The notes beneath the pieces were generated by a model. The model had not been told where the DNA came from. It saw only the letters and a list, made by a program, of their open reading frames with translations, and searched no databases. Shown piece after piece: positions 1,040 to 52,200 of a stretch of DNA of 64,000 nucleotides. Position 1 is the stretch's first letter. Each line of letters begins with the position of its first letter. The position numbers and the translations under genes were made by a program. Source of the DNA: Hyalangium minutum. GTDB lineage: Bacteria > Myxococcota > Myxococcia > Myxococcales > Myxococcaceae. Location of the stretch: assembly GCF_000737315.1 (NCBI RefSeq), contig NZ_JMCB01000010.1:1-64000 (forward strand), written 5' to 3'.

Positions 1040-1207
1040 TGCCGAGGCCTTCACGAAATCAACGAAGGCTCGCAGTGCCGTCGGGATCTGACGGCGACTG
1101 GGGTAGTAGAGGAAGAAGCCGGGATAGGAGGGGCACCAGTCCTCGAGTGCCCTCACCAGGCGGCCCTGTGCGAGCAGCGTGCTCACCTGCGCCTCGAAGA
1201 CATACGG
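1040..1207 (-). pseudogene. C-terminal fragment of a LysR-family substrate-binding domain
   Basis: YVFEAQVSTLLAQGRLVRALEDWCPSYPGFFLYYPSRRQIPTALRAFVDFVK is the characteristic LysR C-terminus. No HTH or N-terminus is present. Confidence 0.8.
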
Positions 1208-1346
1208 TTGCGGAGTGCGGACAGTCCACTAGGAGCGTGGAGCAGGCGGAGGAGGACGCCGCCAGCAGGGCGCCGGACGGAGTTGGACGTCCGGCACCCT
1301 GCTTGCCCCTCGCCAGCACCCGCGCAACGCGGCCCGAGCCGAGCGG

Positions 1347-1709
1347 TCACGGAGAGTCGCGCCCGCCGATCGCCGGGAAGCGCTCGTAGGCCCGCTTCAG
1401 CGCGTCCAGGTGGGCCGGGTTGTCGAGGTCGAGCGGCGCATCGGTGAGCTGTACGACCCACCCGCCCGACGGCGTGCGACGCGCTCGCGTGAGCAGCTCG
1501 GCATCGCGGGCCGGGTCCGGGAACCTCGACCCACTCATCGCGGTGAGGCAATGCAACGAAGGTTTCCTTTTCAGAAAGCGTCCACCCCAGACGCAAGCCG
1601 GGAATCGCACCTTCCATTCCATGAACGATGGCGAGAGGTCGCCCATCGTCGCCCTTGAGTGCAGGCGCGTAGACGATAATGCCAATACCATTCTGGCTAA
1701 CGGCCACTT
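1347..1709 (-). pseudogene. Internally deleted, frameshifted DUF5953-like immunity gene (paralog of 4308-5063)
   Basis: The N-terminal IIVYAPALKGDDGRPLAIVHGMEGAIPGLRLGW segment and the C-terminal FPDPARDAELLTRARRTPSGGWVVQLTDAPLDLDNPAHLDALKRAYERFPAIGGRDSP* segment lie in different frames, and the middle is missing. Confidence 0.85.
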
Positions 1710-2015
1710 CAGCACCAATCAATGACAACGACTTTGAGGGAGGGATCCGCGAACTTCAGAGCGGTCTTGTGCGCTTCGCTGCGCATCAATCCCCTCTTGG
1801 ATGGCGGCTGCCACCACCACCGCACCAACAACAACTCCTGCACCGACGACAATCTCGGGCGCGGCAAAGATACAGAGGGCCACGACTGCGGGGGCGGCTG
1901 CATCCGCGGAGGCAACGGCGCATCGTTTGGTGACATCTCGGAACCTGACCCTGTCGCGATCGAGCGCGTGAAAGCACCTCTCTGCCAAGATCGGCCATTC
2001 GTTCGAGGCATCGCG
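1709..2015 (-). pseudogene. 5'-truncated, internally deleted DUF6310-like toxin gene (paralog of 3403-4311)
   Basis: DASNEWPILAERCFHALDRDRVRFRD...AAIQEGIDA matches the intact toxin N-terminal region. It then jumps, in another frame, to SEAHKTALKFADPSLKVVVIDWC*, which is homologous to the toxin C-terminus. Confidence 0.85.
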
Positions 2016-3402: not shown

Positions 3403-4311
3403 ATGGCCATGCGCATCCGAACGTGCCACGCCCCCCTGCTGCTGCTTCTCTCGGCCTGCGCCACGATGGATCCGAGCCTGGGCGAAACGGAGGATCCGAG
3501 TCCGAGGTACGCCAATCTTCAGCGGGCGGCACTGTACCCCTGGACAGATGATGGGCAGTGCGTGGTGCGCGAAGCCTCCAACGAATGGCCCATCCTTGCG
3601 AAGCGGTGCTTTCACGCGCTCGATCGCGACAGGGTCAGGTTTCGGGATGTCAACAAAAAGTGCGCCATTGCCTCCGTGGATGCAGCCGCTCCCGCAGTCG
3701 TAGCCCTCTGTATCTTTGCCGCGCCCGAGATCGTCGCGGGTGCAGTGATTGTGATTGGCGCGGTGGTGGTGGCAGCCGCCGTCCAAGAGGGGATTGATGC
3801 TTATCAACGGCACGCAGACCGCGAGCGAGCGGAACTCAGGACGCAACCGACACCCGCTGAGGAGCCGTTAGCGAACCAAACACCTAAGCCAAAGGGGTCG
3901 CCCACTGGAGACATCTTCCCAGTACCAGACGCCAACCCGCGCCGCCCGGAGTGCGAGGCCATCCCGGTACCGCGCGCATCCAAAGATAATCCGCATAACG
4001 AGTGCGCCGACACGTTTCCGCCCAACCGTTATCCCGGCAGGGACGTGCGCGTGGGAGGAATACGCTTTGATGCGCTGCAAGTCGGCGTGCGCGTGCTCTG
4101 GGAGATCAAGACCCATCAATTTGATAAGTACAATGCCTTCGTCCAGGGCATGGAGATCAAGAAGGAACTCAAGCAAATCCCAAAGGAGCGAGCCATCGCC
4201 CTGGCATGTGGATATGACTTCGTTGTTGGGGTGAGCACCCTGGAGCACAAAAAAGCACTGATGGAAGCGGATTCCTCGCTCCATGTCGTCGTCACGGGAT
4301 GCACACGATGA
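3403..4311 (+). CDS. Lipoprotein with C-terminal PD-(D/E)xK nuclease-like domain (DUF6310-like polymorphic toxin)
   Basis: Lipobox LLSAC at residue 19, a hydrophobic AVVALCIFAAPEIVAGAVIVIGAVVVAAAV segment, and a C-terminal FDALQ...LWEIKT motif. Confidence 0.75.
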   Translation: MAMRIRTCHAPLLLLLSACATMDPSLGETEDPSPRYANLQRAALYPWTDDGQCVVREASNEWPILAKRCFHALDRDRVRFRDVNKKCAIASVDAAAPAVVALCIFAAPEIVAGAVIVIGAVVVAAAVQEGIDAYQRHADRERAELRTQPTPAEEPLANQTPKPKGSPTGDIFPVPDANPRRPECEAIPVPRASKDNPHNECADTFPPNRYPGRDVRVGGIRFDALQVGVRVLWEIKTHQFDKYNAFVQGMEIKKELKQIPKERAIALACGYDFVVGVSTLEHKKALMEADSSLHVVVTGCTR

Positions 4312-5063
4312 CCACGCCTAGAGCCCTTACCCTCATCGTCTACGCACCTGCACTCGGGGGCAAAGACGGTCGCACGGTCGACGTCATCCATGGGATGGAA
4401 AAGGCGCTCCCGGGCTTGCGTCTGGAATGGCGGCTCTCCGCTGGAGGGCGCCCCATCCCATTACCACAGCGCGATGCATGGCTCCTAGAAAGCATTGAAG
4501 ACGGGGAGTTTCCGATTGTGTGCAACGGGGACGTGAGTTCCCCCGTGACAGTTGATGGAAGGGAAAGGCCGGGACTCCTCAGCCCAGGCGGTCAGCCCAT
4601 GTTTGAAGTCCATGCAAAAATGCCACTGGACGAGCCTGTGATCGCGGCAGCGGCGGCTGTGCTTGAAGCCGTGGCGGAGGGCGCACGCGCGTTCTGGGGG
4701 CATGCGTCGCCCTATGGTTACGGCTCGGAAGTCGCGCAGCAGTATCGCCACTCGACTCATGCACCAGAGGTCTCACCCCGTGGACTTCCCACGCTTAACC
4801 TTCCACAGAAGCTCCCCTCGCCTGAGATTCCCTGTTTCCTCGGGTGGCTGAACTACTGGTCTGCCGCTGCTGCACGCGCCATCGGATTCCCAGACCCCTC
4901 GCGCGACGGCGAACTGCTCACACGGGCGCGGCGCACGGCGTCGGGCGGGGGGGTCGTGCAGCTCACCGATGCGCCGCTCGACCTCGACAACCCGGCCCAC
5001 CTGGACGCGCTGAAACGGGCCTACGAGCGCTTCCCTGTGATCGGCGGGCGCGACTCTCCGTGA
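4308..5063 (+). CDS. DUF5953-like protein, putative cognate immunity protein
   Basis: ATGA overlap with the toxin stop codon; MTTPRALTLIVYAPAL...LGWLNYWS...QLTDAPLDLDNPAHLDALKRAYERFP.IGGR. Confidence 0.75.
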   Translation: MTTPRALTLIVYAPALGGKDGRTVDVIHGMEKALPGLRLEWRLSAGGRPIPLPQRDAWLLESIEDGEFPIVCNGDVSSPVTVDGRERPGLLSPGGQPMFEVHAKMPLDEPVIAAAAAVLEAVAEGARAFWGHASPYGYGSEVAQQYRHSTHAPEVSPRGLPTLNLPQKLPSPEIPCFLGWLNYWSAAAARAIGFPDPSRDGELLTRARRTASGGGVVQLTDAPLDLDNPAHLDALKRAYERFPVIGGRDSP

Positions 5064-9810: not shown

Positions 9811-10545
9811 ATGTCAGATTTCTATAGAAAAGAAAGCGAGACGGTCTTCAATGAACGTTTCAAGACGTTGAATTCTCGGCAGGGCTCGGTAGGGCTGAAC
9901 GGTCATCTCATCTTCCAGGCCAAGAATTATACCGGGGAGAAAGTATTCACCGTAACCACCGCGAAAGGTGTCACGGGCAGCATTAGATTGAAATGCACGG
10001 TTGTCGACGGCCCCATGCTGCGAATTGTGCGGTGCGACAATTCGAATACGCTTGTATTCGAAGGAGACGAAGTGGATGTAGCGGCAATCCTCAACCCTAA
10101 GAGCAAATTGAGAGGGACTCTCAAGTATGAGGCCATCGCGAAAATCTGCAAAGATCACGCGACAAGCTCGGCCCATTCCCCACTGATTTCAGGGTGCAAG
10201 ACAAACAACTTCAGCCAAAACACAAGATACCCGGGGCGCAAGTTGCACCTCGTCTTGAAAGTAAGGACGCCTTTCTCAAACCCTCACGTCTCGGGAAATG
10301 AAAGAGAGTATTTTCTGATAGGGCAAGTGCACGATACGGACTGCAAACAGATTGAGTACTTGGGCAGGACGATGAAGGTCAAGAATACGATTAAGGGAAA
10401 AACTGTAGAGAGGATCGTCGACGAGAAGAAAAACATACCGGTGGAACCTGTAAGACATTTCCTCCCTCAGCCGAGCGATGTGCGGGAGGGTTCACCGTTT
10501 AGACCACTTTTCGGGCGTCGCGATTTGCATCTGGACCGACGGTGA
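9811..10545 (+). CDS. AT-rich hypothetical protein (ORFan), 244 aa
   Basis: Uninterrupted 735-nt ORF at roughly 40-53% GC in four 60-nt samples counted by hand, versus ~70% host; GGGAG RBS-like sequence upstream. No recognisable motif. Confidence 0.6.
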   Translation: MSDFYRKESETVFNERFKTLNSRQGSVGLNGHLIFQAKNYTGEKVFTVTTAKGVTGSIRLKCTVVDGPMLRIVRCDNSNTLVFEGDEVDVAAILNPKSKLRGTLKYEAIAKICKDHATSSAHSPLISGCKTNNFSQNTRYPGRKLHLVLKVRTPFSNPHVSGNEREYFLIGQVHDTDCKQIEYLGRTMKVKNTIKGKTVERIVDEKKNIPVEPVRHFLPQPSDVREGSPFRPLFGRRDLHLDRR

Positions 10546-10887: not shown

Positions 10888-11472
10888 ATGCCAAGACTTG
10901 GACTGAAGTGGATGCCTGTAGGACTGCTCCTGGGAAGTGCGGCGGCCAGCGTTGGCTGCGGCGGCCCCCCGCCAGACGCTGTCGCCACGGAGGTGAGTGA
11001 GCCGGGTGAGGCCCCCCTTGAGCGAAGCGCGTTCAGCACGTGCACCTACTCGATTTGGGGCTGGGGCCTGAAGGTTCTGAGAGATCAGCGAACCAATATC
11101 ATCAACTACGAGGGAGATCTGGAGCTCCAGGTGCGCTACCACGCCAACGGAGTCTCGTTGCCCAGATACCCGGAACCCTCGGAGGGCGTCTCCTATTACA
11201 AGGTTGCGTACCCAGAGCATTACAACCGCCCTGGCCACATCACCGACGTCGTCTCTTCTGTCGAGGCCCCCGTCACCATCACTCTCACTGCCGAAGTTTG
11301 GGAGATTGAGAACGGGCTTCAAGGAGGGACGGATTACGGCACTGCATCGATCCCCTTGACGTTGAACTGCATCGACACGGCCATTGAGGGAAATGTGAAC
11401 GTCAGCGTTCCCGGGGATAACAGCAAGGAAAAGACGGCGCTTGTCCAGGTCTGGATCGACGCGGTCAAATGA
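10888..11472 (+). CDS. Putative lipoprotein, beta-rich hypothetical
   Basis: Signal peptide ending AAASVGC (lipobox-like); GGAGG RBS; 194 aa. Confidence 0.65.
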   Translation: MPRLGLKWMPVGLLLGSAAASVGCGGPPPDAVATEVSEPGEAPLERSAFSTCTYSIWGWGLKVLRDQRTNIINYEGDLELQVRYHANGVSLPRYPEPSEGVSYYKVAYPEHYNRPGHITDVVSSVEAPVTITLTAEVWEIENGLQGGTDYGTASIPLTLNCIDTAIEGNVNVSVPGDNSKEKTALVQVWIDAVK

Positions 11473-11579: not shown

Positions 11580-11786
11580 TCAGTAATAGCAGGCGCACTC
11601 CCCGGAGTGGCAGAAGCCGTAGTTGAACCCTGCGTCCACGCACTGTTCTGTGCAGATCTTGTCGCACTCCCACATGGGCGGCCCCTGGTGTGACGTGGCA
11701 AGGGCCTGCGTGGCACCCAATGAAACGGCGAACCCCACGGATGCGGCGAGCAATGCCTGAGCGCTCTTCTTCCAGATGCGAATCAA
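11580..11786 (-). CDS. Secreted six-cysteine CSalpha/beta defensin-like peptide
   Basis: TTG start with GAGAGG RBS; signal peptide ending ALA; mature C-x3-C-x3-C-x9-C-x4-C-x-C with GFC (GxC). Confidence 0.7.
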   Translation of the reverse strand: MIRIWKKSAQALLAASVGFAVSLGATQALATSHQGPPMWECDKICTEQCVDAGFNYGFCHSGECACYY

Positions 11787-11900
11787 GGTGACCTCTCAAG
11801 ACTGGGTGGTATGAGGTAGGAAATCTCCGACGAGGAGGAGCCAGTTCCGGAGGAGGCGAGAGCGGGGAGTGAGGCAGCGGCCAGTAAGGAGCGGATCTGA

Positions 11901-12567: not shown

Positions 12568-13221
12568 TTATTCCGGGACGGCCCCCAGTACCGGCGTCAA
12601 ATCCGGATCGGCCTTCTGCATCGCCCGACGATAAGCCGGCCGCGCGCCGATGCGTTGCAGATAGGCCAGGATGTTCGGCCAGGGTGAGAGATCATACGGC
12701 TTGAACAGCCGCATCGTCGTCAGCGAGAACACCGTCATGATATCCGCCGCCGTCAACGCTTCACCGGCCAGATAGGGCGCCTCCCCCAGCCGCTTCTCCA
12801 ACGTCGAGAAGACCCGGTTGAACCGGTCCTTGGCCGCCTGCAGCGGCGCGTTCTTGTCCGAAGGATCGACGCGCTCCAGGCTCCTCACCGTCAAGACGGC
12901 CGGTTGCAGCGTCCCGTTCGCGAAGTGGAACCAGTAAAGATAGTCGGTGAAACCGGGCTCGCCGCGCTTCACCGCGAGCCGGCCCGGGCCATAGGTCTGG
13001 ATCAGATACTCGCAGATCGCCCCGGATTCTCCGAGGACGAGGTCGCCGTCGGTGATGATCGGCGCCGTGCCCATCGGGTGAAGCGCCTTGTATTCCGGCG
13101 GGGCCAGCCGGTTGTCGGCCCGGCGCGGATAGCGCTTCAGCTCATAGTCGAGCCCGAGTTCCTCACAGAGCCAGACGATCCGCTCCGATTGCGAACGCCC
13201 GAGATGATGCAGCGTCAGCAT
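12568..13221 (-). CDS. Glutathione S-transferase family protein
   Basis: MLTLHHLGRSQSERIVWLCEELGL...HPMGTAP...LGESGAICEYL...YLAGEALTAADI. Confidence 0.92.
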   Translation of the reverse strand: MLTLHHLGRSQSERIVWLCEELGLDYELKRYPRRADNRLAPPEYKALHPMGTAPIITDGDLVLGESGAICEYLIQTYGPGRLAVKRGEPGFTDYLYWFHFANGTLQPAVLTVRSLERVDPSDKNAPLQAAKDRFNRVFSTLEKRLGEAPYLAGEALTAADIMTVFSLTTMRLFKPYDLSPWPNILAYLQRIGARPAYRRAMQKADPDLTPVLGAVPE

Positions 13222-13310
13222 CTGCTCCCCCTTGCCCGAAGCATTGTCCTGGTCATGGGCGAACCGTAAGCTGCGCGAGTCCGCTCGAAAAGGCGTGCCC
13301 GCATACCGGT

Positions 13311-14129
13311 ATGGCGACTACCACCCTCCCCGAATTTCTCCGCGCTCGCCGCGAGCGGCTTCAGCCCGAATCGACCGAGCGGCGTCGCACTCCCGGACTT
13401 CGTCGCGAGGAAGTCGCGGCGCGCGCCGGAGTGAGCGTCACCTGGTACACGTGGCTCGAACAAGGCCGCGGCGGCGTGCCGTCCGACGACGTGCTCGAAC
13501 GCCTCGCTCGCGCACTCGAGCTCGACGCCACGAATCGCGAGATGCTGTTCCTGCTCGCTCACGATCGTCCGCCACCGCGTCGCCCTACGCCACCCGCCGA
13601 GGTCACGCCAGCGCTGCAGCGCGTGCTCGACAACCTGCACGTGCCCGCGTTCGTGAAGACGCCAACGTTTCAGATCGTCGCGTGGAATCGCGCCGCCGTG
13701 GCGGTGATCGGCGATTACGCCGCGATTCCCGAGCGCGACCGCAACATGCTGCGCCGGGTCTTTCATCCCGAAGCCGCCACGTTCCTGCCGCATGGCGATG
13801 ACATGCGCCGCACGTGCCTCGCCGCGTTTCGCGTCGACATCGCGCGTGCAGGTGCCTCCGAAGAAGCTGCTGCGCTCGTCGACGAGTTGATGGAGACGAG
13901 CGCGGACTTTCGACGGCTGTGGGCCGAGAATGAGCTGCACACGCACGGTGTGCGGTACAGGCGGCTCGTCCGGCCGAATGTCGGCGAGCTCGTGTTCGAG
14001 ACGTCGGTGTTGTCGGTCGACGGCAGCGACGGCCTCAGCATGTTCGTCTTATCACCGGCGGACGATGCTTCCGCGCGTGGAGTCGACCAGCTGCTCCGCG
14101 AGCTTGTCGGGTCGCCCTCGACAAGGTGA
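13311..14129 (+). CDS. XRE/HTH_31 + MmyB-like ligand-binding transcriptional regulator
   Basis: FLRARRERL...RRRTPGLRREEVAARAGVSVTWYTWLEQGR, followed by PA.V......IVAWN..A; divergent from GST. Confidence 0.9.
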   Translation: MATTTLPEFLRARRERLQPESTERRRTPGLRREEVAARAGVSVTWYTWLEQGRGGVPSDDVLERLARALELDATNREMLFLLAHDRPPPRRPTPPAEVTPALQRVLDNLHVPAFVKTPTFQIVAWNRAAVAVIGDYAAIPERDRNMLRRVFHPEAATFLPHGDDMRRTCLAAFRVDIARAGASEEAAALVDELMETSADFRRLWAENELHTHGVRYRRLVRPNVGELVFETSVLSVDGSDGLSMFVLSPADDASARGVDQLLRELVGSPSTR

Positions 14130-33401: not shown

Positions 33402-36400
33402 CTACGGCTTGCCCGAGGCGCGCTTGCGCGAGGGCTCCGCACCGCCCTGAGCCGTATGTGCCCCTTCGCCGTGCACCAGCTGCGCGTGCACGCGATCCAC
33501 CTGCTCTTCCCAGGTGGTGCGCAAGATGCGCTCCGCAGCCTCCGTGCGAATCGAAGCGCGCAGGGCCGTGTTCGTGACGGCGGCGCGCAGCTGCTCCAAC
33601 ACGCACGAATAGGTCGGCTCGGCCAGCAGGCAGTTCTTCCCGTGCTCCAGCAGCCAGTGGTTGGCGGGGTTGTCGTTGGTCACCACCGTCACCCCACAGG
33701 CCATCAGCTCGAAGGGCAGGTACGAGGGGTGCTTGGTGAACATGAAGCACAGGCCCACGTCGCACTCCCGGTACAGGTCCGCCGTCCGCTCGTAGGGCAG
33801 CACGCCCAGGCTGTTGATGACGCCCTGCAAGCCGTACTGCTCCGGATCCCACTTCTCACCCGCGGTGACGATCTCCACCGCGGGCCCCAGCTCTTGCTTG
33901 AGCTGGCGCAGCGTGGCGATGCCCAGCTCGAAGGCGTTCCGGTCCGTGGAGGGCCGCCCGTAGAAGAAGACGCGCACGGGCCCGCCCCGGCGCTCGGGAC
34001 GCCGGTCATGGAAGATGGAACGATCCACGGTGGGCTCGAACCAGCAACCCTGCATGGGGTACTGCTTCGTCACGTAGTCGTAGAGCCCTTGGGTGTTGAA
34101 GATGCCGTACAGGCCCATCCGGTAGGTCTGCTCGGCCAGCGCCGAGTAGGTGCCCGCAGTGAAGAACTGCGGCTCGTAGTCCTGGATGAAGTAGGCCTTG
34201 AGCATGGCGCGCGGGTGCTCCAGCACCGAGTACGCCGACGTCCAGAACGTGGCGATGGCCACGTCGCACTCGGGCAAGTCCTTCACCTCGTCCATGCTCC
34301 GCAGCACCCGGAAGCGCCCCGGCGGCTCTGGGTAGAGCACGGACGCGCGCGCCTGCATCTCGGCCGCGGTGACCTGCGGGTTGGTGTAGATGACCAGGTC
34401 GCTCTCCGCGCCGTGCCGCCGCTTCAGCATGTCCGCGAAGCGCAGGATGGTGTGGATGCCACCGTAGGGGTGGTGGAAGGACGGGATGAACCAGCAGATG
34501 CGATCGATGCGCCCCTTCTGGCGCAGGGCCGCGAGCCGCTCGGGGGCCTGGCGGCGCGCCTCGTCCGCCTGGGCGGAGGTGTAGTCCAGCCCCTTCAGGT
34601 GGTCCGCCACGTGGCGCTGGTGCTGGGCGCGCTCAGCGGAGATGGAGGATTGAGCGCTGGGCAAGTCATACACCAGCGTCCGTACCGCCAGCTCCTCGCC
34701 ACTCTCCGTGTGGCGCCGCAACGTGGCGTCCGTGCTCAGCAGGGTGAGGTTCGGGTTGTAGAAGGGATCGCCCTTCAGCAAGTAAGGCCGGTAGACCGAG
34801 TACGACATCCAGAAGTCGTTCTCGGGGATGGAATCCAGCCGACGGCTGGCGGACTCGTGGTGCACCAGCTTGCAGTGGGGCGTGTAGACGACGCGCAGCC
34901 CGGCCTCCACCAGCCGCAGCCCGATATCCACATCGCTGCCGCAGACGACGAAGCGCTCGTCGAAGCCCTTCATCGCCTCGAACACCTCGCGCCGCAGCAT
35001 GACGCACGCGCTGGTGACGGACAGGTAGTTGCGCACCCAGTCCGCGTGGCCGAACGGCGTCCACGCGGTGGTATCTGGCACGCGCCAGAACGGGTGCCCC
35101 GCGAACCCCGTGAGCCCCACCACCACGCCCGCATGCTGGAGCGTGCCATCCGGGAAGAGCAGCTTTGCTCCCACCGCGCCTACCTCGGGGCGCTGCGCCT
35201 GGCCGATCAGCTCCTCCAGCCAGCCGGGGTCGATGACCTCCATGTCGTTATTGAGGAAGAGCAGCAGGTCGCCACGCGCCTCCCGGGCCGCGAAGTTATT
35301 GATGGCCGGGTAGTTGAACGGGTGATCCCACGTCAGCTTGCGGATGCGCGGATCCGTGAGCGTCTCCAGCAGCGCGAACGTCTCCGGCTTCGTGCTGTTG
35401 TTGGAGACCAGCAGCAGCTCGTAGTTCGTGTACCGCGTCTTCTCCAGCAGCGTGGAGGTGAGCGTCCGCAGCAGCTCGGGCTTGTCCTTGAACGGGACGA
35501 TGATGGAGACGAGCGGAGTGCCCCGCACCGGGTAGCGCACCCGGTAGTGCGTGGGGGCCACCTCCTCCACCGTGCCGGGCTCGTTCAGCCGCTGCAGGTG
35601 CTCGGTGAGCGCGCGCACTCCTGCGGCCGAGGCCGCCTGGAGCTTGGCCGGATCCTGCGACAGCGAGATGTCCGAGGCGCGCCAGTGATAGAGGATGCCG
35701 GGAACGTGGGCAATGCGCGGCGTGTGCTCGGAGAGCCGCAGCAGGAACTCGAAGTCCTGCGAGCCCTGGAAGCCGTCGCGCAGGCCGCCCGCCTTGGCGA
35801 GCAGCGTGCGGCGCACCACGACGAAGTGGCAGATGTAGTTGACCGAGCGCAGCAGGTCGGGCGACCAGTCCGGCTTGAAGAAGGGCCCGAAGCGCCGGCC
35901 GTCATTGCCCAGGCGATCCTCGTCCGAGTAGAGCAGGTCCAGTTCGGGCTCGCGGTCCAGCCGCAGCACCATCTCCGCCAGGGCGTTGGGCGCCAGCACA
36001 TCGTCATGGTCGAAGAAGGCCACGAAGTCGCCGGTGGCCATCTCGATGGCCGCGTTGGTGGCGGCGGAGATGCCAGCATTGGCGGGCAGCGTCTTGAAGC
36101 GGATGCGGGCGTCCGTCTGGGCATAGCTGCTCAGCACGCGCTCCACGTGGGGCGAGCGGCTCCCATCGTTTGCCAGACACAGCTCCCAATTCCCGTAGCT
36201 CTGGGCACGCACGGAGTCGATGCACTGGCGGAGGATGGGCTCGGGGGTCTCGTAGACGGGGACCACCACGCTGATGAGCGGCTTGCGGCTCAGGGTCTCC
36301 AGCGCCGCAGCCGAGCGCTGATACCAGGCGGGCTCGCGCTCGGCGCACCACGCCTCGTAGTTGTCGGCCACCGGCGCCGCCGAGGCCGGCACCCGCGTCT

Positions 36401-37316
36401 CAAGCAGGTTGGCCAGGCACAGCGAGACCTCATTGTTGAAGCTCGCCTGGCGGCGGAAGACCTCACGCCACAGGGGCAACGAGGCTTTGGCCGCCTTGGG
36501 CAGCTGCACCTGGGCGAACGGATCATTCAGCGCGTGCAACTCGGCCACCCGGCGCGCGCGCTCATCGAGCGTCACCGAGCGTGGATTGGCCGCCAGCACC
36601 AGCAACTCCACCGCCGCCTCGTTCCACCGCTGCTGGCCCGCCATCAGCTCCCGCAGCCACGGCCCCATGGCCTGGAGCCACGAGCTCTTCACCAGCTTGA
36701 CGGCCTTGCCCACCCCGCTCCGCCGGTGGGAGGCCACCTGCCACTGCGAGGTGTCCCGCATCGGCTCGAGCCGGCGGCGAACCCAGTCGCCCAGGTCCAT
36801 CCCCATGGTGGTGGCGCTGCGGGCCTGCAGGTACTCGATCACCGCGAGCAGCTCGTTGTTGAAGGCGTACTGAGGCCGCAGCATCTCCACGTGCAGGGGC
36901 TTGAGTCCCTGGACGAAGACGCTCTTGGCGGCGGTGACGGCGCGGCCCACGCCCTTGCGGTGCGAGGGAGGCACCTCGAAGTGGAGGATGTCCGCCAGCT
37001 TCCGCGCGGCCTGCAGTGGCGTGTGCGGCCGGGCCGAGTCCTCGGGCAAGCGGCTCTTCATCTCGCGCGTGAGCAGCTGGAGGATCCGCTGCTGCACCAT
37101 GAGGTCCTGGCACCCGGTGCTGCTGCACGGCTGCTGCGCCTGGAGGGCGCGGCGCTGGGCCGCCACCATCTCCGCCAACTCTCCAGCCGTGAACGTCCGC
37201 GAGATCTCCGCGGGGCTGTCCCCGCTGAACTCGGGCAGCGTCGCCAGCGGAGGGACGGGGGAGCGCCCGGAAGCGCGATCAGAAGAGGACGGCGTGTCGA
37301 GTGATTTCTTGGACAT
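33402..37316 (-). CDS. ~1304-aa multidomain glycosyltransferase (N-terminal helical repeats, GT2, GT2, WsaF-like GT-B)
   Basis: ISVVVPVYET...FFDHDD; VSIIVPFKD...FLNND; C-terminal GGIHTI...ATFW...YFIQDYEP.F...FFYGRPSTDRNAFEL (WsaF-like). Confidence 0.9.
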   Translation of the reverse strand: MSKKSLDTPSSSDRASGRSPVPPLATLPEFSGDSPAEISRTFTAGELAEMVAAQRRALQAQQPCSSTGCQDLMVQQRILQLLTREMKSRLPEDSARPHTPLQAARKLADILHFEVPPSHRKGVGRAVTAAKSVFVQGLKPLHVEMLRPQYAFNNELLAVIEYLQARSATTMGMDLGDWVRRRLEPMRDTSQWQVASHRRSGVGKAVKLVKSSWLQAMGPWLRELMAGQQRWNEAAVELLVLAANPRSVTLDERARRVAELHALNDPFAQVQLPKAAKASLPLWREVFRRQASFNNEVSLCLANLLETRVPASAAPVADNYEAWCAEREPAWYQRSAAALETLSRKPLISVVVPVYETPEPILRQCIDSVRAQSYGNWELCLANDGSRSPHVERVLSSYAQTDARIRFKTLPANAGISAATNAAIEMATGDFVAFFDHDDVLAPNALAEMVLRLDREPELDLLYSDEDRLGNDGRRFGPFFKPDWSPDLLRSVNYICHFVVVRRTLLAKAGGLRDGFQGSQDFEFLLRLSEHTPRIAHVPGILYHWRASDISLSQDPAKLQAASAAGVRALTEHLQRLNEPGTVEEVAPTHYRVRYPVRGTPLVSIIVPFKDKPELLRTLTSTLLEKTRYTNYELLLVSNNSTKPETFALLETLTDPRIRKLTWDHPFNYPAINNFAAREARGDLLLFLNNDMEVIDPGWLEELIGQAQRPEVGAVGAKLLFPDGTLQHAGVVVGLTGFAGHPFWRVPDTTAWTPFGHADWVRNYLSVTSACVMLRREVFEAMKGFDERFVVCGSDVDIGLRLVEAGLRVVYTPHCKLVHHESASRRLDSIPENDFWMSYSVYRPYLLKGDPFYNPNLTLLSTDATLRRHTESGEELAVRTLVYDLPSAQSSISAERAQHQRHVADHLKGLDYTSAQADEARRQAPERLAALRQKGRIDRICWFIPSFHHPYGGIHTILRFADMLKRRHGAESDLVIYTNPQVTAAEMQARASVLYPEPPGRFRVLRSMDEVKDLPECDVAIATFWTSAYSVLEHPRAMLKAYFIQDYEPQFFTAGTYSALAEQTYRMGLYGIFNTQGLYDYVTKQYPMQGCWFEPTVDRSIFHDRRPERRGGPVRVFFYGRPSTDRNAFELGIATLRQLKQELGPAVEIVTAGEKWDPEQYGLQGVINSLGVLPYERTADLYRECDVGLCFMFTKHPSYLPFELMACGVTVVTNDNPANHWLLEHGKNCLLAEPTYSCVLEQLRAAVTNTALRASIRTEAAERILRTTWEEQVDRVHAQLVHGEGAHTAQGGAEPSRKRASGKP

Positions 37317-37451
37317 GGGGCAAAGGGCCTGCATCCCTACACCAGACACATGTCGGGGCGCGAGGGCTGCATGAAGGGACGACCCTCCCGGCAGGCGAGC
37401 GAGCACTCGGCCGCCGGGTGGCTACAGCTCACCTGAGGGACAGCTCACACG

Positions 37452-40400
37452 TCAGGAACGACCGGCCCGGAAGCTGCTCGTGGGAAAGGACACCGGCTGG
37501 CGAAGCTCTCCGGGGTGCGGCAGCTCCGCGCGGGAGACCGGGAGGCCCATGAGGGCCGCGTACACCTTATCCACCTGCTCCTCCCACGTCGTACGCGTCA
37601 CTCGCTCCACGGCGGCGGCGCTGATCCGCGCGCGGAGTGAAGCATCCTGAACCGCGTGACGCAGCTGGGTCAGCACGCACGAGTAGGTGGGCTCAGCCAG
37701 CAGGCAGTTCTTCTCGTGCTCCAGCAGCCAGAGGTTTGCGGGGTTGTCGTTGGTCACCACCGTGACGCCGCACGCCATCATCTCGAAGGGCAGGTACGAG
37801 GGGTGCTTGGTGAACATGAAGCACAGGCCCACATCGCACTCCCGGTACAAGTCTCCCGTCTTCTCGTACGGGAGGATGCCGTAGTTGTGGATCACCCCCT
37901 GCACCCCGAACACCGCCGGATCCCACTTCTCACCGGCGGTGACGATCTCCACCGCGTTGCCCAGCTCCTTCTTGAGCTGACTCAGCGTGGCCAGGCCCAG
38001 CTCGAAGGCGTTCCGGTCCGTGGACGGACGCGCGTAGAAGAACAGCCGCACGGGCCCCTTGCGGGCGGGCCGCCGCGCATGGAACACCGAGCGCTCCACG
38101 GTGGGCTCGAACCAGCAGCCCTCCATGGGGTAGTTCGCGGTGACGTGGTCGTGCAGGCCCTGGGTGTTGAAGATGCCGTAGAAGCCCATCCGGTACGTCT
38201 GCTCCGCCAGCGCGTAATAGCTGCCCGCCGGATAGAAGAGTGGCTCGAAGTCCTGAATGAAGTAGGCGCGCGCCTTCGCCCGCGGGTACTGCAGCATCAC
38301 GTACGCGCTCGTCCACAGCGTGGCGATTGCCAGGTCCGACGGAGGCAGCCCGGCCAGATCCTCCGAGCGCTGGATGATGTGGAACTGGCCCGGAGGCTCC
38401 GGGAAGAGCGGCGCAATGCGCGCCTCCATCTCCCGCGGCGTCACCCGGGGGGTGTCGTAGATGACGATGGTGTTCTCCACGCCATGCCGGCGCTTCAGCA
38501 GATCCCCGAAGCGCAGGATGGTGTGCACGCCGCCGTAGGGGTGGCCGAAGCCCGGGACGAACCACGTGACGCGCCGCAGCCCCTCCGAGCGCAACGCGGC
38601 GAGCTGCCGGGGCGCCTCGGCCCGCGAGCGCTCCACCACCTCCACGGAGTAGTCCAGGGCGCGCACCTGACCGGAGAGGTGCCGGACGTGGTTGGCTCGC
38701 GCCGCAGTGACGTCGTCCACGCGCGAGCTGGGCAACTCGCCCAGGAGCACCTGGATGGCCAGGCTCTGTGCGTCCTCCGTCCCCCGGAAGCTCCCATCCG
38801 AGCCCAGCAGCGTGAGGTTCGCGTTGTAGAAGGGATCGCCGCCGTACAGCCACCGCCGGTAGGCCACGTACGAGCGCCAGAAGTCATTCTCCGGGATGGA
38901 GTCGGTCTTCCGCGTCGCGGACTCGTGGTGGATGAGGGTGGCATGCGGCGTGTACACCACGCGCAGGCCATGCTCCACGGCGCGCAGGCCGAGCTCCACG
39001 TCGCTGCCGCAGACGATGAAGCACTCGTCGAAGCCCTCGAGCTGCTCGAAGATGGTGCGGCGCATCATCACGCACGCGCCGGTGACCGCCAGGTAATTGC
39101 GCGTCCAGTCCGCCCGGCCCATGGGCGTGGAAGCCGTGGGGGCCAGCTGGGTGAACGGGTGGCCCGCATAGCCGCCCAGCCCCACCACGACACCCGCGTG
39201 CTGCAGCGTGCCGTCCGGGAAGAGCAGCCGCGCCCCCACGAGCCCCACCTCGGGCCGCTGCGCCTGGCCGATCAGCTCCTCCAGCCAGCCCTCCTCGATG
39301 ACCTCGATGTCGTTGTTGAGGAACAGCAGCAGCTCGCCCGTGGCCTGCTCGACGCCAAAGTTGTTGATGGCCGAGTAGTTGAACGGGTGATCCCACGTCA
39401 GCTTGCGAATGCGCGGATCCGTGAGCGTCTCCAGCAGCGCGAATGTCTCCGGCTTCGTGCTGTTGTTGGAGATGAGCAGCAGCTCCACGTTCGGGTAGCG
39501 CGTGTACTTCACGAAGCTGGTGACGAGCGTCTCCAGCAGCTCGGGCTTGTCCTTGAACGGAACGATGATCGACACGCGCGGCGTGCCTTGCACGGGGTAG
39601 CGGACCCGGAGCGTGCCCGAGGGCGACACCAGGGCCTCGCCCTGCTCTCCCAGGCGCCGCAGATGCTCGGCGAGCACGCGCCTCCCTGGGCCAGCCTGGG
39701 GCACGGGCACGTTGGCCAGGGGGCCTGGCGCCGTGGCGCGGCGGTGCAGCAGCACGCGGGGGACGTGGGTGATGCGCTGGGTCTGCTCGGAGAGGCGCAG
39801 CGCCAAATCGTAGCCGTGGAAGCCCACCAGACCCGGCTGATGGCCGCCCACCCGCTCCAGCAGCGAACGGCGGACGACGAGCAGCGAACCCCAGTAGTGG
39901 CACGAGCGCAGCAGATCCGGCGACCAGTCCGGCTTGAAGAACGGCTCGCGGCGCCTCCGGTTCTCGTCGAGCTGGTCCTCGTCCGCATACAGCACGTCGA
40001 AGTCGATCTCGGCCCGCGTGCGCCGGGCCACCTCGGCCAGCGCGTGCGGCGCGAGCTCATCGCCCAGCTCCATGAAGGCGATGATCTCACCCTGGGCCAG
40101 GGCGCGCGCCGCCTCGTAGGCCCGGGCCGGATCGTTGCCCACGGACTCGGTGACAATGTGGATCCGCTCGTCCTCGGCGTCCTGCATCTCCACCCACGTG
40201 GAGAGCTTGCGCGAGACGGTGCCGGTGCTGGCGATACACAACTCCCACTCGCCGTAGCTCTGCTTCAGCAACGAGCCGAGCGTGGCACGGACCTCGGCTT
40301 CCGAGACGTTCGTGCCCACAGCCACCACGCTGATGAGCGGCGGGGACTCCAGCTCCTCGGCCTCGCGCTCGGCCTCGGCCCGCTGCTCGGGCTCCACGCG

Positions 40401-41411
40401 CGCGCACCACTCCTCATAGGGAGAGAGCTCCACCACGCGCACCTGGGAGTTCGCGCCCAGCAGCAGCCGCAGCTGCTCCGTCACCTGCTCATTGAAGCGG
40501 TGTTGGCGCCGCAGCACCTCACGCCACAGCGGCGCGGCGGCACGCACTCCCGCGGACAGGCCGGGCAGGTTGAACGGATCGCTCAACCTCCAGAGCGAGC
40601 TGAGCAACTCCTTCGCGCTCGCGGCCTCCGCCGCAGTCGGGGGTGTCCCGTCCCGCCGGGCGAGCCGAGCCAGAGCCTCCACCGCCTTGGCGTTCCACGC
40701 GGCCTGGGCCCGGAACAGCTCGCGCAGCACGGGCCCCAGCGCCGACAGATAGGAGCGCTTGGCCAGCGCCACGAGCGCCCCCGTGCCCACGCTCCGGTGG
40801 GAGCTGACGCTCCACGCCGTGGGGTTGGCCAGCGGGACGAGCCGGCTCCAGATGCCGTCCGCCTGCTGCCGAGCGCCCGCCTTGCCCTGGAGCGCGAGCA
40901 GATCATTGAGCGAGGCGATGAGCGCCTCATTGAAGCGGTGCTGGGGGCGCAGCAGCTCCATGTGGAAGGGCTTGAGCCCCCGGAGCACCGCGCGCTTCGC
41001 CGCCGTCACGGCCTTCCCCACGCCTCCGCGGTGCGAGCCTGGCACCAGGAAGTCCATCACGTGGGGCGAGATGTTCACCGGGCCGTGCGCGGCTGGCGTC
41101 GCCGGGGGCGCAGGCGGCACGGCAGTCCGATGGCGCAGCTCCTGGAGGAGCATCCGCAGCGTGCGCTCATGCGCGACGAGCTCGGAGGCCCGATCCTCCC
41201 CGCTGCCGCGCAGCTCGTCGATGACGAGACGCTCGGCCGCCACCATCTCCGCCAGCTCGCCCACAGTGGGCTGGCCCTGGTACACGTAGCCGCCCTCGTC
41301 GCTCAGCGCTCCCTGCCGGGGCAGCGGGCGTCCGGCCGGGGCCTGCTTCTGACGGTTCCGGCGGCCGCCGCCAGAACGGGACGGGGGGTTCTTCTTCTCT
41401 TGGTTGGACAT
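37452..41411 (-). CDS. ~1319-aa paralogous multidomain glycosyltransferase; first GT2 degenerate
   Basis: Same architecture as 33402-37316; the first GT2 has FMELGD in place of FFDHDD. Confidence 0.9.
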   Translation of the reverse strand: MSNQEKKNPPSRSGGGRRNRQKQAPAGRPLPRQGALSDEGGYVYQGQPTVGELAEMVAAERLVIDELRGSGEDRASELVAHERTLRMLLQELRHRTAVPPAPPATPAAHGPVNISPHVMDFLVPGSHRGGVGKAVTAAKRAVLRGLKPFHMELLRPQHRFNEALIASLNDLLALQGKAGARQQADGIWSRLVPLANPTAWSVSSHRSVGTGALVALAKRSYLSALGPVLRELFRAQAAWNAKAVEALARLARRDGTPPTAAEAASAKELLSSLWRLSDPFNLPGLSAGVRAAAPLWREVLRRQHRFNEQVTEQLRLLLGANSQVRVVELSPYEEWCARVEPEQRAEAEREAEELESPPLISVVAVGTNVSEAEVRATLGSLLKQSYGEWELCIASTGTVSRKLSTWVEMQDAEDERIHIVTESVGNDPARAYEAARALAQGEIIAFMELGDELAPHALAEVARRTRAEIDFDVLYADEDQLDENRRRREPFFKPDWSPDLLRSCHYWGSLLVVRRSLLERVGGHQPGLVGFHGYDLALRLSEQTQRITHVPRVLLHRRATAPGPLANVPVPQAGPGRRVLAEHLRRLGEQGEALVSPSGTLRVRYPVQGTPRVSIIVPFKDKPELLETLVTSFVKYTRYPNVELLLISNNSTKPETFALLETLTDPRIRKLTWDHPFNYSAINNFGVEQATGELLLFLNNDIEVIEEGWLEELIGQAQRPEVGLVGARLLFPDGTLQHAGVVVGLGGYAGHPFTQLAPTASTPMGRADWTRNYLAVTGACVMMRRTIFEQLEGFDECFIVCGSDVELGLRAVEHGLRVVYTPHATLIHHESATRKTDSIPENDFWRSYVAYRRWLYGGDPFYNANLTLLGSDGSFRGTEDAQSLAIQVLLGELPSSRVDDVTAARANHVRHLSGQVRALDYSVEVVERSRAEAPRQLAALRSEGLRRVTWFVPGFGHPYGGVHTILRFGDLLKRRHGVENTIVIYDTPRVTPREMEARIAPLFPEPPGQFHIIQRSEDLAGLPPSDLAIATLWTSAYVMLQYPRAKARAYFIQDFEPLFYPAGSYYALAEQTYRMGFYGIFNTQGLHDHVTANYPMEGCWFEPTVERSVFHARRPARKGPVRLFFYARPSTDRNAFELGLATLSQLKKELGNAVEIVTAGEKWDPAVFGVQGVIHNYGILPYEKTGDLYRECDVGLCFMFTKHPSYLPFEMMACGVTVVTNDNPANLWLLEHEKNCLLAEPTYSCVLTQLRHAVQDASLRARISAAAVERVTRTTWEEQVDKVYAALMGLPVSRAELPHPGELRQPVSFPTSSFRAGRS

Positions 41412-41418
41412 GGGAGGC

Positions 41419-42792
41419 TCAGGAAGCGTTGGCCCGCGCGGGCTGCACGGCGTGGCGGGTGGAGGGAATGGCATCCACGGACCAGACGTGCGGAGGACGC
41501 GCCACCCCGGTGTCCCCGAGAGCGGAGCGCACGGTGAATCGGGACTGGCCCTTGTGCTCGTCGTACGTCTTGCCGTCATGGCCCTTCACGTACACGTCCA
41601 GGATGTAGTCGCCAGGAGTGAACGTGACCCGCTGCAGGGTCAGCCGCACGGTCCCCGCGGGAGGCAGCGGGCATGGCAGGGACACGGACTCGAGCGAGGT
41701 ATGGGTGCCGTACACCTGGACGCCATCCGCCCGGCTCACGGAGATGCCAAACGTCGCATCCTCCACGGGCTGCCGGGTGGTGAAGTCGATCTGGATCTCC
41801 AGCAGGTCCTCGGTGTCCACCGAGGTGACCTCCGCCCCCGCGGCTCCCCGCAGACTCACCCGGGACAGCTCCACCTCACGGCTGCTGGGGCGCGCGTTCG
41901 AGGCGTCGGTCAGCTGCCCCTGGGCTCCAGGCAGAGGGACAGGCGTCACAGGCACCTGGGGCAGCGCGCCGCCGTCCTTGGCGATCGCCGCCGGGCCCAG
42001 GACCATGGACTGCTCCTCCGCCAGCGCCACGGCCTGCCGGTACTCCTGCGTCACGTCCTTGGGGGGACCCACGCGGCGGATACGCCCCGCGTCCACCCAG
42101 ACGGCCAGATCACACCACTTCTCCACGGTGACCAGATCGTGGGTGACGAGGACAATCGTCTTCCCCGCCGCCTTGAACTCCATCATCTTCGCGAGGCTCT
42201 TCTTGCCAAAGTGCTCGTCGCCCACGGCAAGCACTTCGTCCACGATGAGGATGTCCGGATCCACATGCGTGGCCACGGCGAAGGCCAACCGGGCGTACAT
42301 GCCGCTGGAGTAGGTGCGCACCGGCTCGTCGACAAAGTCGCCCAGCTCGCTGAAGGCGATGATGTCGTCCATCCGGGCGCGGATCTCTGCCCGCGTCATC
42401 CCCAGGATGATGCCGTTGATGATGATGTTCTCCCGGCCCGAGAAGTCCGGGTGGAACCCCGCCCCCAGCTCCAGCAGGGCCGAGATCCGTCCCCGCATCT
42501 CGATCTCCCCGGAGGTGGGCGAGTAGATGCCCGTCATCAGCTTGAGCAACGTGCTCTTGCCCGAGCCGTTGCGACCGATGATGCCCACCGTCCGCCCACG
42601 GGGAATGGTCAGGTCGATGCCGCGCAGCGCCTCGATGAACGTCTTGTCGGCCGCGCCGCGCTTGCCCTTGAGCCAGCGCACCAGCTCCGACTTGAACGTC
42701 GTGTACTCGCGCCGGATGGTGCTCTTCTTGAACCGCTTGATGACGTTGCGGATGACGACGGCGTCGCCATCCGGATGCGCTGGGTGACTCAA
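41419..42792 (-). CDS. wzt: Polysaccharide ABC transporter ATPase with Wzt C-terminal carbohydrate-binding domain
   Basis: GRNGSGKST, LELGAGFHPDFSGREN, YSSGM.ARL.FA, DEVLAVGD; TTG start overlaps the wzm stop (TTGA). Confidence 0.93.
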   Translation of the reverse strand: MSHPAHPDGDAVVIRNVIKRFKKSTIRREYTTFKSELVRWLKGKRGAADKTFIEALRGIDLTIPRGRTVGIIGRNGSGKSTLLKLMTGIYSPTSGEIEMRGRISALLELGAGFHPDFSGRENIIINGIILGMTRAEIRARMDDIIAFSELGDFVDEPVRTYSSGMYARLAFAVATHVDPDILIVDEVLAVGDEHFGKKSLAKMMEFKAAGKTIVLVTHDLVTVEKWCDLAVWVDAGRIRRVGPPKDVTQEYRQAVALAEEQSMVLGPAAIAKDGGALPQVPVTPVPLPGAQGQLTDASNARPSSREVELSRVSLRGAAGAEVTSVDTEDLLEIQIDFTTRQPVEDATFGISVSRADGVQVYGTHTSLESVSLPCPLPPAGTVRLTLQRVTFTPGDYILDVYVKGHDGKTYDEHKGQSRFTVRSALGDTGVARPPHVWSVDAIPSTRHAVQPARANAS

Positions 42793-43568: not shown

Positions 43569-43819
43569 GCGGCGGTATCCCTACACCAGATGAGCGGCTG
43601 GCCGCGAGCCCCCCGACTTCCGCGCCTGTCCGCCCCCGAGCCGCCTTGCCCGGCAAGCAAGCGCGAGCGGCCTCCGCCGGTGGATCCCTCTGCGCCGCGC
43701 CCCCAGCGCACCCGCGAACCGAGGGCACCTGCCCCTTCGGTCCGTGGCACCCCATCCTACATGCTCCTGGTGGATTTTTCCGTTGCATTTCCAAGGGATG
43801 GACAGCTCCCCGCTATTCG

Positions 43820-46800: not shown

Positions 46801-47086
46801 GGGTGCCCCTTCGAGCCGCGAGAGCCTGCACACCCTGGCCATCTTCGAGAGCGCCTTTCCTCCGGGACAGGGCACCGCGCGGATGCGCGTGGAGGCCCGG
46901 CTGTCCGCCGAGCGGGCCCAAATCCTGTGGCACGGCACCACCTCGGAGGGAGTGCTGCTGAGCTTGTTGGCGCAGAAGACCGAGCAGACGATCCGCGCGC
47001 TCTGTGCCCAGGCGGATGGCAATCGGGCCGCTCCCGCGCAAGGTCCGGGTGCCGCGCGGACCCCCACCGCTCAGAGCTCCCACTGA
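43820..47086 (+). CDS. Fatty acyl-AMP ligase fused to a condensation/epimerization-like domain, motifs degenerate, no carrier domain
   Basis: FAAL motifs (YGELDRRARAIA, LQYT.G...PKGV, WLP.HQ.LGL, YGLAE, RTGDLG); C/E-like region with CHPSLLDESSWRILATDL. ATG chosen at 43820. Confidence 0.8.
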   Translation: MDPHEAVREHTHSPASGGARQLWKEARTFADILRRRAAEQGQIPAFTFLGAEASEDVTLSYGELDRRARAIAMELEKRSLSGQRVLIVLPPGPASVASLFGCLYAGVIAVPVPPPLFDAPGLEPKLLAAIAQDSGAAAALVGGPRPAEGQRLTIEGLAAHIDLIPTEDAASASPPADWTPPFVDSRAIALLQYTAGTASTPKGVRVTHASLLDNSEALRRGLGQTASDKLLLWLPTHQGLGLLEGVLQPLYTGLPAVLLPPSVFFQKPRRWLEAISTHGATISGAPDFAYELCVRRVNEAERAGLDLSRWRVAFSSGEAVRAETMERFSSHFAPCGFQPRAFRPVYGLAECTYVVASSRSEDGPTLRGVGVDALSQQRITERRGAATKLVSCGPASTVQVIIVNPATRALRGDQEIGEVWVTGLSVADGYWGRVGTTSEAFRGRLSGSAAGMRAFMRTGDLGATSNGELYVTGRIQDVIIWEGQDLRLHDLEFDVEASHPALVPGSCAAFAHKQGREEQLIVVAEAFPPGTSQAAPVRMEALTREITRAIRLNVYQRHGVQPTELLLLRAGTLPRSSLGRVSRNAVRTAYPTFESEPLLRDRGEEPTETVSTLQVPAPTAAVATRGEAEPEGTIPTGLVPLTPAMHAVHAPAHAVEHPTGACRVFELPQGTRWQHVEEALHAVWMAHETLRLRFARSEAGGPEAWAAAITPEKSPVPLTRIELSTRPDEECWQLVERTARELGLELGQCIGNLASFVFCDRGPRSPAWLLAACHPSLLDESSWRILATDLAEACEQSRTRGRVRLTPQSGSLTRWVQELMNEIQLPRIASEARAHWLARAPVPAPARPSPASQELPAPGALAVIDAAALRRASTLFDVSQEALLLAACAHAYGTQLQRPTVRIGLEQSARVSSHYPVDASRMLGNLDFSFPATLALEPDAAPQEVARYAHAELLGAPLGGLAYDGLRAYGADRALATSLTALPAPDFTLHLADEGAPSSRESLHTLAIFESAFPPGQGTARMRVEARLSAERAQILWHGTTSEGVLLSLLAQKTEQTIRALCAQADGNRAAPAQGPGAARTPTAQSSH

Positions 47087-48879: not shown

Positions 48880-49095
48880 GACACCCTCCTAAGCACTGCG
48901 AGGCGCTGCGATGAGTGGCTCATAAAGGCGGGTTCTGCGGGTTGAGGAGAGAACTGCGGGACGGGAGCAGATACACCCTTCCCGTGCGGGCTGGAGGCCC
49001 GGAAATCACTCAGGGCACGGAGGGAGGGGGTTACTCACCCCGCTCCGTCCGGGAGGCGGGCGAGGCGTATCACCCCCGCCCTCCGCACCATGAAC

Positions 49096-52200
<3,105 letters not shown>

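Follow-up and report, generated by a model that had tools for sequence, protein, structure and literature searches.

The 64,000-nucleotide stretch of Hyalangium minutum DNA analysed here (the window) carries on its minus strand, at 11580-11786, a short open reading frame that raises two questions: whether it is a gene at all, and what the small cysteine-rich peptide that it would specify might do. Our analysis indicates that it probably encodes minutusin-1, a bacterial cis-defensin of the cysteine-stabilised alpha/beta (CSalpha/beta) type from Cystobacterineae myxobacteria, with the biogenesis and mode of action proposed below. The parts of the locus are as follows.

11580-11786, minus strand: coding sequence of the 68-aa minutusin-1 precursor, with a TTG start and a TGA stop at 11580-11582, defined from the ORF list, from the GC content of third codon positions (GC3) and from a row of the published Table S3 discussed below.
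11792-11797, minus strand: Shine-Dalgarno-like GAGAGG, 5 nt upstream of the TTG, as seen in the sequence itself.
11697-11786, minus strand: Sec-type signal peptide, residues 1-30, made up of MIRIWKK, a hydrophobic core and TQALA; the cleavage site read from the sequence is the Phobius site given in Table S3 (PMC11561630).
11667-11696, minus strand: Pro-rich N-terminal tail of the predicted mature peptide, residues 31-40 (TSHQGPPMWE), with low pLDDT in the first residues of the model.
11583-11666, minus strand: CSalpha/beta core, residues 41-68, with the framework C-x3-C-x3-C-x9-C-x4-C-x-C and G-F-C as the GXC of a gamma-core; its Cys and Gly are invariant and a helix and two strands are modelled.

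The translation of the minus-strand frame is MIRIWKKSAQALLAASVGFAVSLGATQALATSHQGPPMWECDKICTEQCVDAGFNYGFCHSGECACYY. It agrees exactly with an earlier reading made from the sequence only, which had proposed, with no strand given, a 68-aa ORF starting at TTG, preceded by a ribosome-binding site and opening with a signal peptide that ends in ALA. The 38-aa mature peptide which that reading had delimited likewise has its cysteines precisely where they were placed, at 41, 45, 49, 59, 64 and 66, and G57-F58-C59 supplies the GxC. The mature peptide contains five acidic residues (E40, D42, E47, D51 and E63) against a single lysine (K43), together with two histidines, and has a computed net charge of -4 (about -4.5 at pH 7), a pI of 4.49 and an average mass of 4275.7 Da with three disulfides. 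Two other kinds of leader were considered and ruled out: the signal has neither a Cys nor a lipobox, as a lipoprotein would, and a double-glycine or RiPP leader is countered by the lack of a GG motif and of any adjacent peptidase or transporter.

The peptide is already known. Table S3 (class II) of Cardoso et al. (2024, ACS Omega) contains a row for Minutusin-1, WP_044192120.1, txid394096, with the signal MIRIWKKSAQALLAASVGFAVSLGATQALA and the mature sequence TSHQGPPMWECDKICTEQCVDAGFNYGFCHSGECACY (PMC11561630); the taxon identifier is that of Hyalangium minutum, of the Archangiaceae within the Cystobacterineae. The precursor described here is identical to that row save for the final Tyr, which is missing from the machine-read table; this table drops letters in other rows too. 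Cardoso et al. also built a homology model of minutusin-1 on plant defensin templates (PMC11561630). The peptide was thus named, classed and modelled in 2024, and the present finding is a correct re-discovery. In the literature that we searched, we found no later functional work on these bacterial defensin-like peptides.

A frame of this length could in principle have arisen by chance in GC-rich DNA and yield no product. Such an origin would suit the TTG start, and our promoter and terminator scan recognised neither a sigma-70-type promoter nor an intrinsic terminator around the gene. It would also suit the state of the databases, since the RefSeq record WP_044192120.1 is marked 'Removed' in Table S3 (PMC11561630) and the gene-position collection holds no gene call with the minutusin-1 product. 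These last two observations bear out the earlier remark that the gene is easily missed by annotation. The base composition of the frame speaks against chance, with GC of 0.51/0.52/0.80 by codon position and 0.85 at position 3 of the mature part, close to the GC3 of the real genes nearby (0.83 for a glutathione S-transferase (GST) gene, 0.84 for a kinase gene and 0.95 for a DUF1801 gene). This periodicity is confined to the minutusin-1 frame; for an overlapping 361-aa ORF, which lies in another frame, the values are 0.72/0.52/0.58, not the GC3 pattern of a real gene. The TTG start is itself supported by the family alignment, because the N-termini of homologues (MIRS.KK) line up with the TTG-initiated MIRIWKK. 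In relatives, dN/dS is about 0.2, with the signal and mature parts alike, although this is a crude estimate from one Corallococcus/Pyxidicoccus orthologue pair with dS near saturation; for that subgroup it points to conserved function rather than to an arms race. Given the frame-specific GC3, the ribosome-binding site, a family of full-length homologues in which Cys and Gly do not vary, and a fold that AlphaFold models with confidence, the ORF is a genuine stand-alone coding gene, and a chance frame is hardly credible.

The extent of the homologue family depended strongly on the method of search. A word-indexed search with the single peptide as query returned no match but itself, and a scan of a genome collection with the peptide recovered no relative and not even the source genome. 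When 1.84 billion cluster representatives were scanned exhaustively with HMMER, 11 other proteins of 66-77 aa that align end to end came up, the best at E 5.4e-14 with only 54% identity, and a profile search returned 41 family members, from sources including Corallococcus exiguus, Pyxidicoccus sp., a Gemmatimonadota MAG and Longimicrobium sp. The relatives that the sequence-only reading had suggested looking for do exist, among them the myxobacterial Corallococcus and Pyxidicoccus members. The CSalpha/beta signature C...CxxxC...GxC...CxC is present in minutusin-1 as C41, C45-x3-C49, G57-x-C59 and C64-x-C66, its columns being invariant in the family, and the invariant columns of the alignment are C45, C49, G53, C59, C64 and C66.

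Conservation is concentrated in the leader. Across 43 family members the mean pairwise identity is 60% over leader residues 18-30 (..s[LF]GATQALA), whereas the non-Cys residues of the core reach 22% and the tail 24%. In its C-terminal half, ..ALGFGATQALA(A)P.. (11697-11747, residues 14-30), the signal is conserved even between Myxococcota members and those from Gemmatimonadota and Longimicrobium. By sequence comparison, the family is one defined by its conserved leader (..GFGATQALA..), and it extends into Gemmatimonadota, a phylum that is not one of the three in which the 2024 survey recorded bacterial defensins (PMC11561630). Divergent paralogues with this leader also stand in tandem, one pair on each of two metagenomic or MAG contigs (72-73% GC), at the following positions.

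Locus L003, 6001-6210 and 6270-6479: tandem defensin-like paralogues.
Locus L005, 6001-6216 and 6278-6487: tandem defensin-like paralogues.

In Corallococcus, many divergent paralogues are found per genome (Table S3, PMC11561630). The predicted mature charge is negative in 27 of 45 family peptides, neutral in 11 and positive in seven, with a median of -1, so that acidity is a family trait; acidic, hydrophobic tails have also been described for classes II-IV (PMC11561630). The earlier count of five acidic residues against one Lys, and the description of the peptide as anionic, thus stand, whereas the charge is no special feature of minutusin-1, being negative in most of its family.

An AlphaFold2 model of the mature peptide, computed from a 24-sequence alignment, has a mean pLDDT of 82, rising to 88-92 over residues 11-38, and contains a helix at 8-22 and strands at 26-30 and 33-37 (mature numbering). 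The mature peptide is predicted with confidence to fold as a helix packed on a two-stranded beta-hairpin, that is, as a CSalpha/beta peptide. The 50 best Foldseek matches in the PDB are all CSalpha/beta peptides (scorpion toxins or defensins), with E-values that are weak (0.07-1) because the chain is so short. The top match is the scorpion toxin BmBKTx1 (1R1G/1Q2K; rmsd 0.5-0.7 A over 27 residues, TM 0.80-0.83, 37% identity), followed by alpha-KTx 3 toxins (kaliotoxin, BmKTX, agitoxin), nasonin-1, insect and plant defensins, and actinomycesin 2RU0. Comparison of the modelled helix-hairpin with known folds, which had been put forward as a check on the defensin-like reading, therefore came out in its favour in 50 of 50 cases.

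Sequence comparison of the family points the same way. As a single sequence the peptide scores below threshold in Pfam, with 17.6 bits for Defensin PF24552 (cut-off 27), 14.6 for Gamma-thionin and 13.2 for Toxin_2, and in NCBIfam the query has no match and one family member reaches 18 bits against the 65-bit cut-off of NF038042 (actinodefensin). A profile of the family, searched against PDB sequences, finds nasonin-1 at E 1.3e-6, alpha-KTx 19.1 (BmBKTx1) at 7.5e-6 and Centruroides defensin-1 at 5.9e-5, and the alignments to the first two bring all six Cys into register. With the predicted helix and hairpin, the nasonin-1 match upholds the original proposal of a CSalpha/beta defensin-like peptide. 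From the one-to-one alignment of Cys with nasonin-1 and BmBKTx1, the disulfides would be C1-C4, C2-C5 and C3-C6.

The toxin-like matches raise the possibility that minutusin-1 is an ion-channel ligand in the manner of scorpion toxins, directed at eukaryotic grazers such as amoebae and nematodes or at bacterial K+ channels. Its best structural matches are indeed alpha-KTx toxins, namely the BmBKTx1, kaliotoxin, BmKTX and agitoxin listed above; its loops after C2 (x3, x9, x4, x1) equal those of the alpha-KTx 3 toxins; and the motif CV.AGF..G.C....C.CY is common to minutusin-1 and BmBKTx1. The residues on which the toxins depend are nevertheless not there. A classical K+ pore block is unlikely because Phe58 stands before C4 where the toxins have their pore-plugging Lys, and the other basic residues of the toxin interface are replaced by neutral or acidic ones: R9, K11, K26, K28 and K31 of BmBKTx1 align with T, Q, E, A and Y of minutusin-1, as do basic residues of the alpha-KTx 3 toxins. 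Channels blocked by alpha-KTx toxins present an acidic vestibule, as is well established in the pharmacology of these toxins, and a peptide with a net charge of -4 would be expected to be repelled by it. A channel ligand of this kind is therefore quite improbable.

The surroundings of the gene bear on the remaining possibilities. The minutusin-1 gene lies 115 bp downstream of the DUF1801 gene on the same strand and is convergent with the gene for a predicted lipoprotein, the first of the following features of the window.

10888-11472, plus strand: predicted lipoprotein of 194 aa, signal ending in ..SVGC, no Pfam match.
9811-10545, plus strand: 244-aa ORF of 50% GC, the minimum of the window, no Pfam match.
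12568-14129: module of the GST gene and an MmyB-like HTH regulator gene transcribed divergently from it.
33402-41579 (minus strand), 43646-47086 (plus strand) and 47455-52200 (minus strand), as listed: the glycosyltransferase, NRPS-like and RND efflux regions.

The 64-kb window holds no second member of the family. Comparison of five homologue loci (from Corallococcus, Pyxidicoccus, Longimicrobium and the two metagenomic contigs) with one another and with the window revealed no conserved partner gene, and at none of the five does a candidate transporter, protease or immunity gene stand beside the homologue. The 231-aa neighbours at the two tandem loci, L003 and L005, showed no likeness when their unaligned translations were compared by eye. 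The minutusin-1 gene stands alone, with no conserved neighbours. Whereas the window as a whole has about 67% GC, the stretch from 11.1 to 12.0 kb has 57-61%, and between 9.75 and 10.5 kb the value drops to 49-50%. No tRNA lies nearer than 63.8 kb, no integrase was found among the ORFs scanned, the flanking repeats around the region are only short ones at chance level, and no syntenic empty site was found among the 80 loci of the neighbouring GST that were compared. The earlier reading had placed the gene in an inserted cargo segment, a placement that these results do not bear out and do not contradict either.

In those GST loci, the GST and MmyB-like regulator pair are the only genes of the window common to other myxobacteria. 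The GST protein is 88-95% identical in Archangium, Vitiosangium, Pyxidicoccus, Corallococcus and Hyalangium versicolor; for Sorangium the figure is 86-88% and for one Burkholderia 81%, and within loci L006-L017 the regulator (90-93% identity) accompanies it in seven of nine Myxococcia loci and in none of three from Sorangium. This two-gene module looks horizontally mobile. Elsewhere in the window, a DUF6310 protein (3403-4311, plus strand) is followed directly by a full-length DUF5953 protein (4299-5063, plus strand), and a short N-terminal fragment of DUF5953 lies nearby on the opposite strand (1183-1728, minus strand), a layout that resembles a toxin/immunity-type pair with an orphan remnant. 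Further along are two adjoining giant multi-domain glycosyltransferases of 1334 and 1375 aa (GT2 plus WsaF-like), an NRPS-like adenylation-condensation protein that stands by itself, and a pair of RND efflux proteins (an outer-membrane factor plus an AcrB-like protein); we found no link between these genes and minutusin-1.

A conventional role for a peptide of this superfamily would be that of an antimicrobial defensin or bacteriocin acting on bacteria or fungi through membrane damage or through lipid II binding, as actifensin/actinomycesin and plectasin do. Minutusin-1 has the GXC gamma-core of the superfamily, nasonin-1, its best sequence match among solved structures, is active on two Gram-negative bacteria, actinomycesin 2RU0 is among its fold matches, and myxobacteria are predators. 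The properties of the peptide itself fit poorly with such a role. With a net charge of -4 and a pI of 4.49 it is not the cationic molecule that a classical defensin is, and membrane attack of the cationic kind is unlikely because of that charge. In ancient invertebrate-type defensins such as plectasin, an N-terminal G-F-G-C segment forms the lipid II pocket. Minutusin-1 does not have this segment, and lipid II binding of the plectasin or actinomycesin type is unlikely in view of the short n-loop (C-x3-C) and the absence of linked ABC transporters. Flanking ABC transporter and immunity genes are lacking altogether, unlike in the defensin clusters of Actinomyces. Xanthusin-1 of Myxococcus xanthus, the only class II peptide assayed, had an MIC above 128 ug/mL on every microbe listed (PMC11561630), a negative result that is not simply transferable to minutusin-1 because the two are only distantly related. 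Taken together, we regard an antimicrobial function as rather unlikely.

The peptide might instead serve its producer, as an endogenous extracellular signal or as a developmental or structural peptide with no role against other organisms. Xanthusin-1 is constitutively expressed, at a higher level on solid medium poor in nutrients, and neither prey nor competitor induces it (PMC11561630), as might be expected of such a peptide; one subgroup of the family is under purifying selection, and an endogenous peptide would need no immunity gene. However, the minutusin-1 gene is non-syntenic even in another Hyalangium species, its distribution is patchy, it lies in a stretch of lower GC, each Corallococcus genome has many divergent paralogues, and no receptor or regulator is linked to it, all of which would be unusual for a core signalling system. 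An endogenous function is accordingly improbable in our judgement.

We favour a role outside the cell and directed at other organisms. The precursor would be exported by the Sec pathway and cut by signal peptidase I after Ala30, and the six Cys would then be oxidised to three disulfides by the periplasmic Dsb system. The product would be an acidic (pI about 4.5), aromatic-rich miniprotein of 4.28 kDa, released with no transporter, maturation enzyme or immunity gene dedicated to it. Outside the cell it may be a binder that withstands proteases and recognises a specific target, employed against other organisms whether for competition, for predation or to ward off grazers. The hydrophobic and aromatic face of the hairpin (F54, Y56, F58, Y67 and Y68) could make the contact, and neither an electrostatic attack on membranes, as by cationic defensins, nor a lysine plug, as in scorpion K+ channel toxins, would be involved. 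We favour this extracellular role because four features resemble those of secreted effector families: the leader is conserved while the mature domain varies, a genome can hold several paralogues, copies occur in tandem, and the location is non-syntenic and of lower GC. That minutusin-1 acts as an extracellular, target-specific ligand on other organisms has, in our estimation, nearly even chances of being correct. Points against it are the seven cationic members of the family, the antibacterial activity of nasonin-1, the nearest solved relative by sequence, and the dN/dS of about 0.2.

As a discovery the locus adds little, since name, class and homology model are already in the literature. It illustrates that the reading of raw sequence can recover a true gene for a small secreted peptide that current annotation has dropped. 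What our analysis contributes is independent coding evidence and a confident fold model, a leader-defined family that reaches Gemmatimonadota, a measure of its distance from the solved prototype, and a residue-level argument against the modes of action of toxins and cationic defensins. The target of minutusin-1, if found, would inform the debate on whether eukaryotic defensins and toxins came from bacteria, and a very stable miniprotein scaffold would also be on offer. More tentatively, and with considerable doubt, the peptides with the ..GFGATQALA.. leader may form a mostly anionic, short-n-loop clade of Myxococcota and Gemmatimonadota whose mature domains lie closer to the nasonins of arthropods and to alpha-KTx toxins than to the solved bacterial prototype, which engage in specific, non-antimicrobial binding, and which are perhaps the bacterial stock nearest to the scorpion-toxin scaffold.

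How minutusin-1 relates to known systems depends on what is compared. By definition, a class II cis-defensin has a signal peptide, no disulfides beyond three and an N-terminal tail of 9-13 residues that is unstructured (PMC11561630), and minutusin-1 has six Cys and a tail of 10 residues before C1, the length of which depends on the predicted cleavage site. The solved prototype of the class, xanthusin-1 (PDB 7UNX), is likewise a secreted, acidic CSalpha/beta peptide with three disulfides and a tail of about 9-10 unstructured residues at its N-terminus. Its signal peptide, however, is unrelated to that of minutusin-1, and its loops (x5, x3, x6, x5, x1) differ from those of minutusin-1 (x3, x3, x9, x4, x1). 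In a phmmer comparison with the query, xanthusin-1 scores -0.2 bits for the mature domain and 13.9 bits for the precursor, against about 17 bits each for nasonin-1, kaliotoxin and BmBKTx1 with the mature query, and 7UNX is absent among the 60 best PDB profile matches; the comparison thus gave no sign of homology between the mature domains of minutusin-1 and its class prototype. On these alignments, class II is a structural grouping and not a clade.

The highest scorers against the query are a group of corallosins and their kin: corallosin-10 to -15, carmarthensin and aurantiasin-1, all of class II, and the class I corallosins of Corallococcus and Myxococcus. They have the leader ..SFGATQA.. 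and the Cys framework in common with minutusin-1, to which they are 35-54% identical, with an n-loop of 2-5 residues; corallosin-12 reaches 52 bits as a precursor and 27.7 bits in its mature part. The group is mostly acidic, like minutusin-1, whereas the class I corallosins, unlike minutusin-1, are basic around a K-C-x-N motif. The leaders of class I corallosins and of minutusin-1 are homologous, and the spacing between the GAT motif and the first Cys is 16 residues in the former and 15 in the latter. Because the leader is the same and this distance so similar, the class I/II split of corallosin-type peptides may reflect only which Ala-x-Ala site the predictor chose.

Among other bacterial CSalpha/beta defensins, actifensin and actinomycesin (AMSIN, PDB 2RU0) of Actinomyces have the same kind of fold, but they are cationic lipid II binders with non-classical leaders, encoded in clusters between ABC transporter genes, and in these respects they are unlike minutusin-1. 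The closest solved structures are eukaryotic: alpha-KTx 19.1 (BmBKTx1), kaliotoxin and agitoxin, and nasonin-1 (2KOZ), with profile E-values of 1e-6 to 1e-3 and rmsd of 0.5-1.0 A. The scorpion toxins and nasonin-1, a wasp peptide that at micromolar levels kills two Gram-negative bacteria, are like minutusin-1 in their short n-loop and in the spacing from C3 through C4 and C5 to C6. They are strongly basic, whereas minutusin-1 is acidic and has neither the Lys/aromatic dyad nor the basic ring. By sequence, the mature domain of minutusin-1 is closer to nasonin-1 and the alpha-KTx toxins than to xanthusin-1, and on this comparison and the fold model the minutusin-1 subfamily could be the nearest bacterial relative of the scaffold on which scorpion K+ toxins and nasonin are built.
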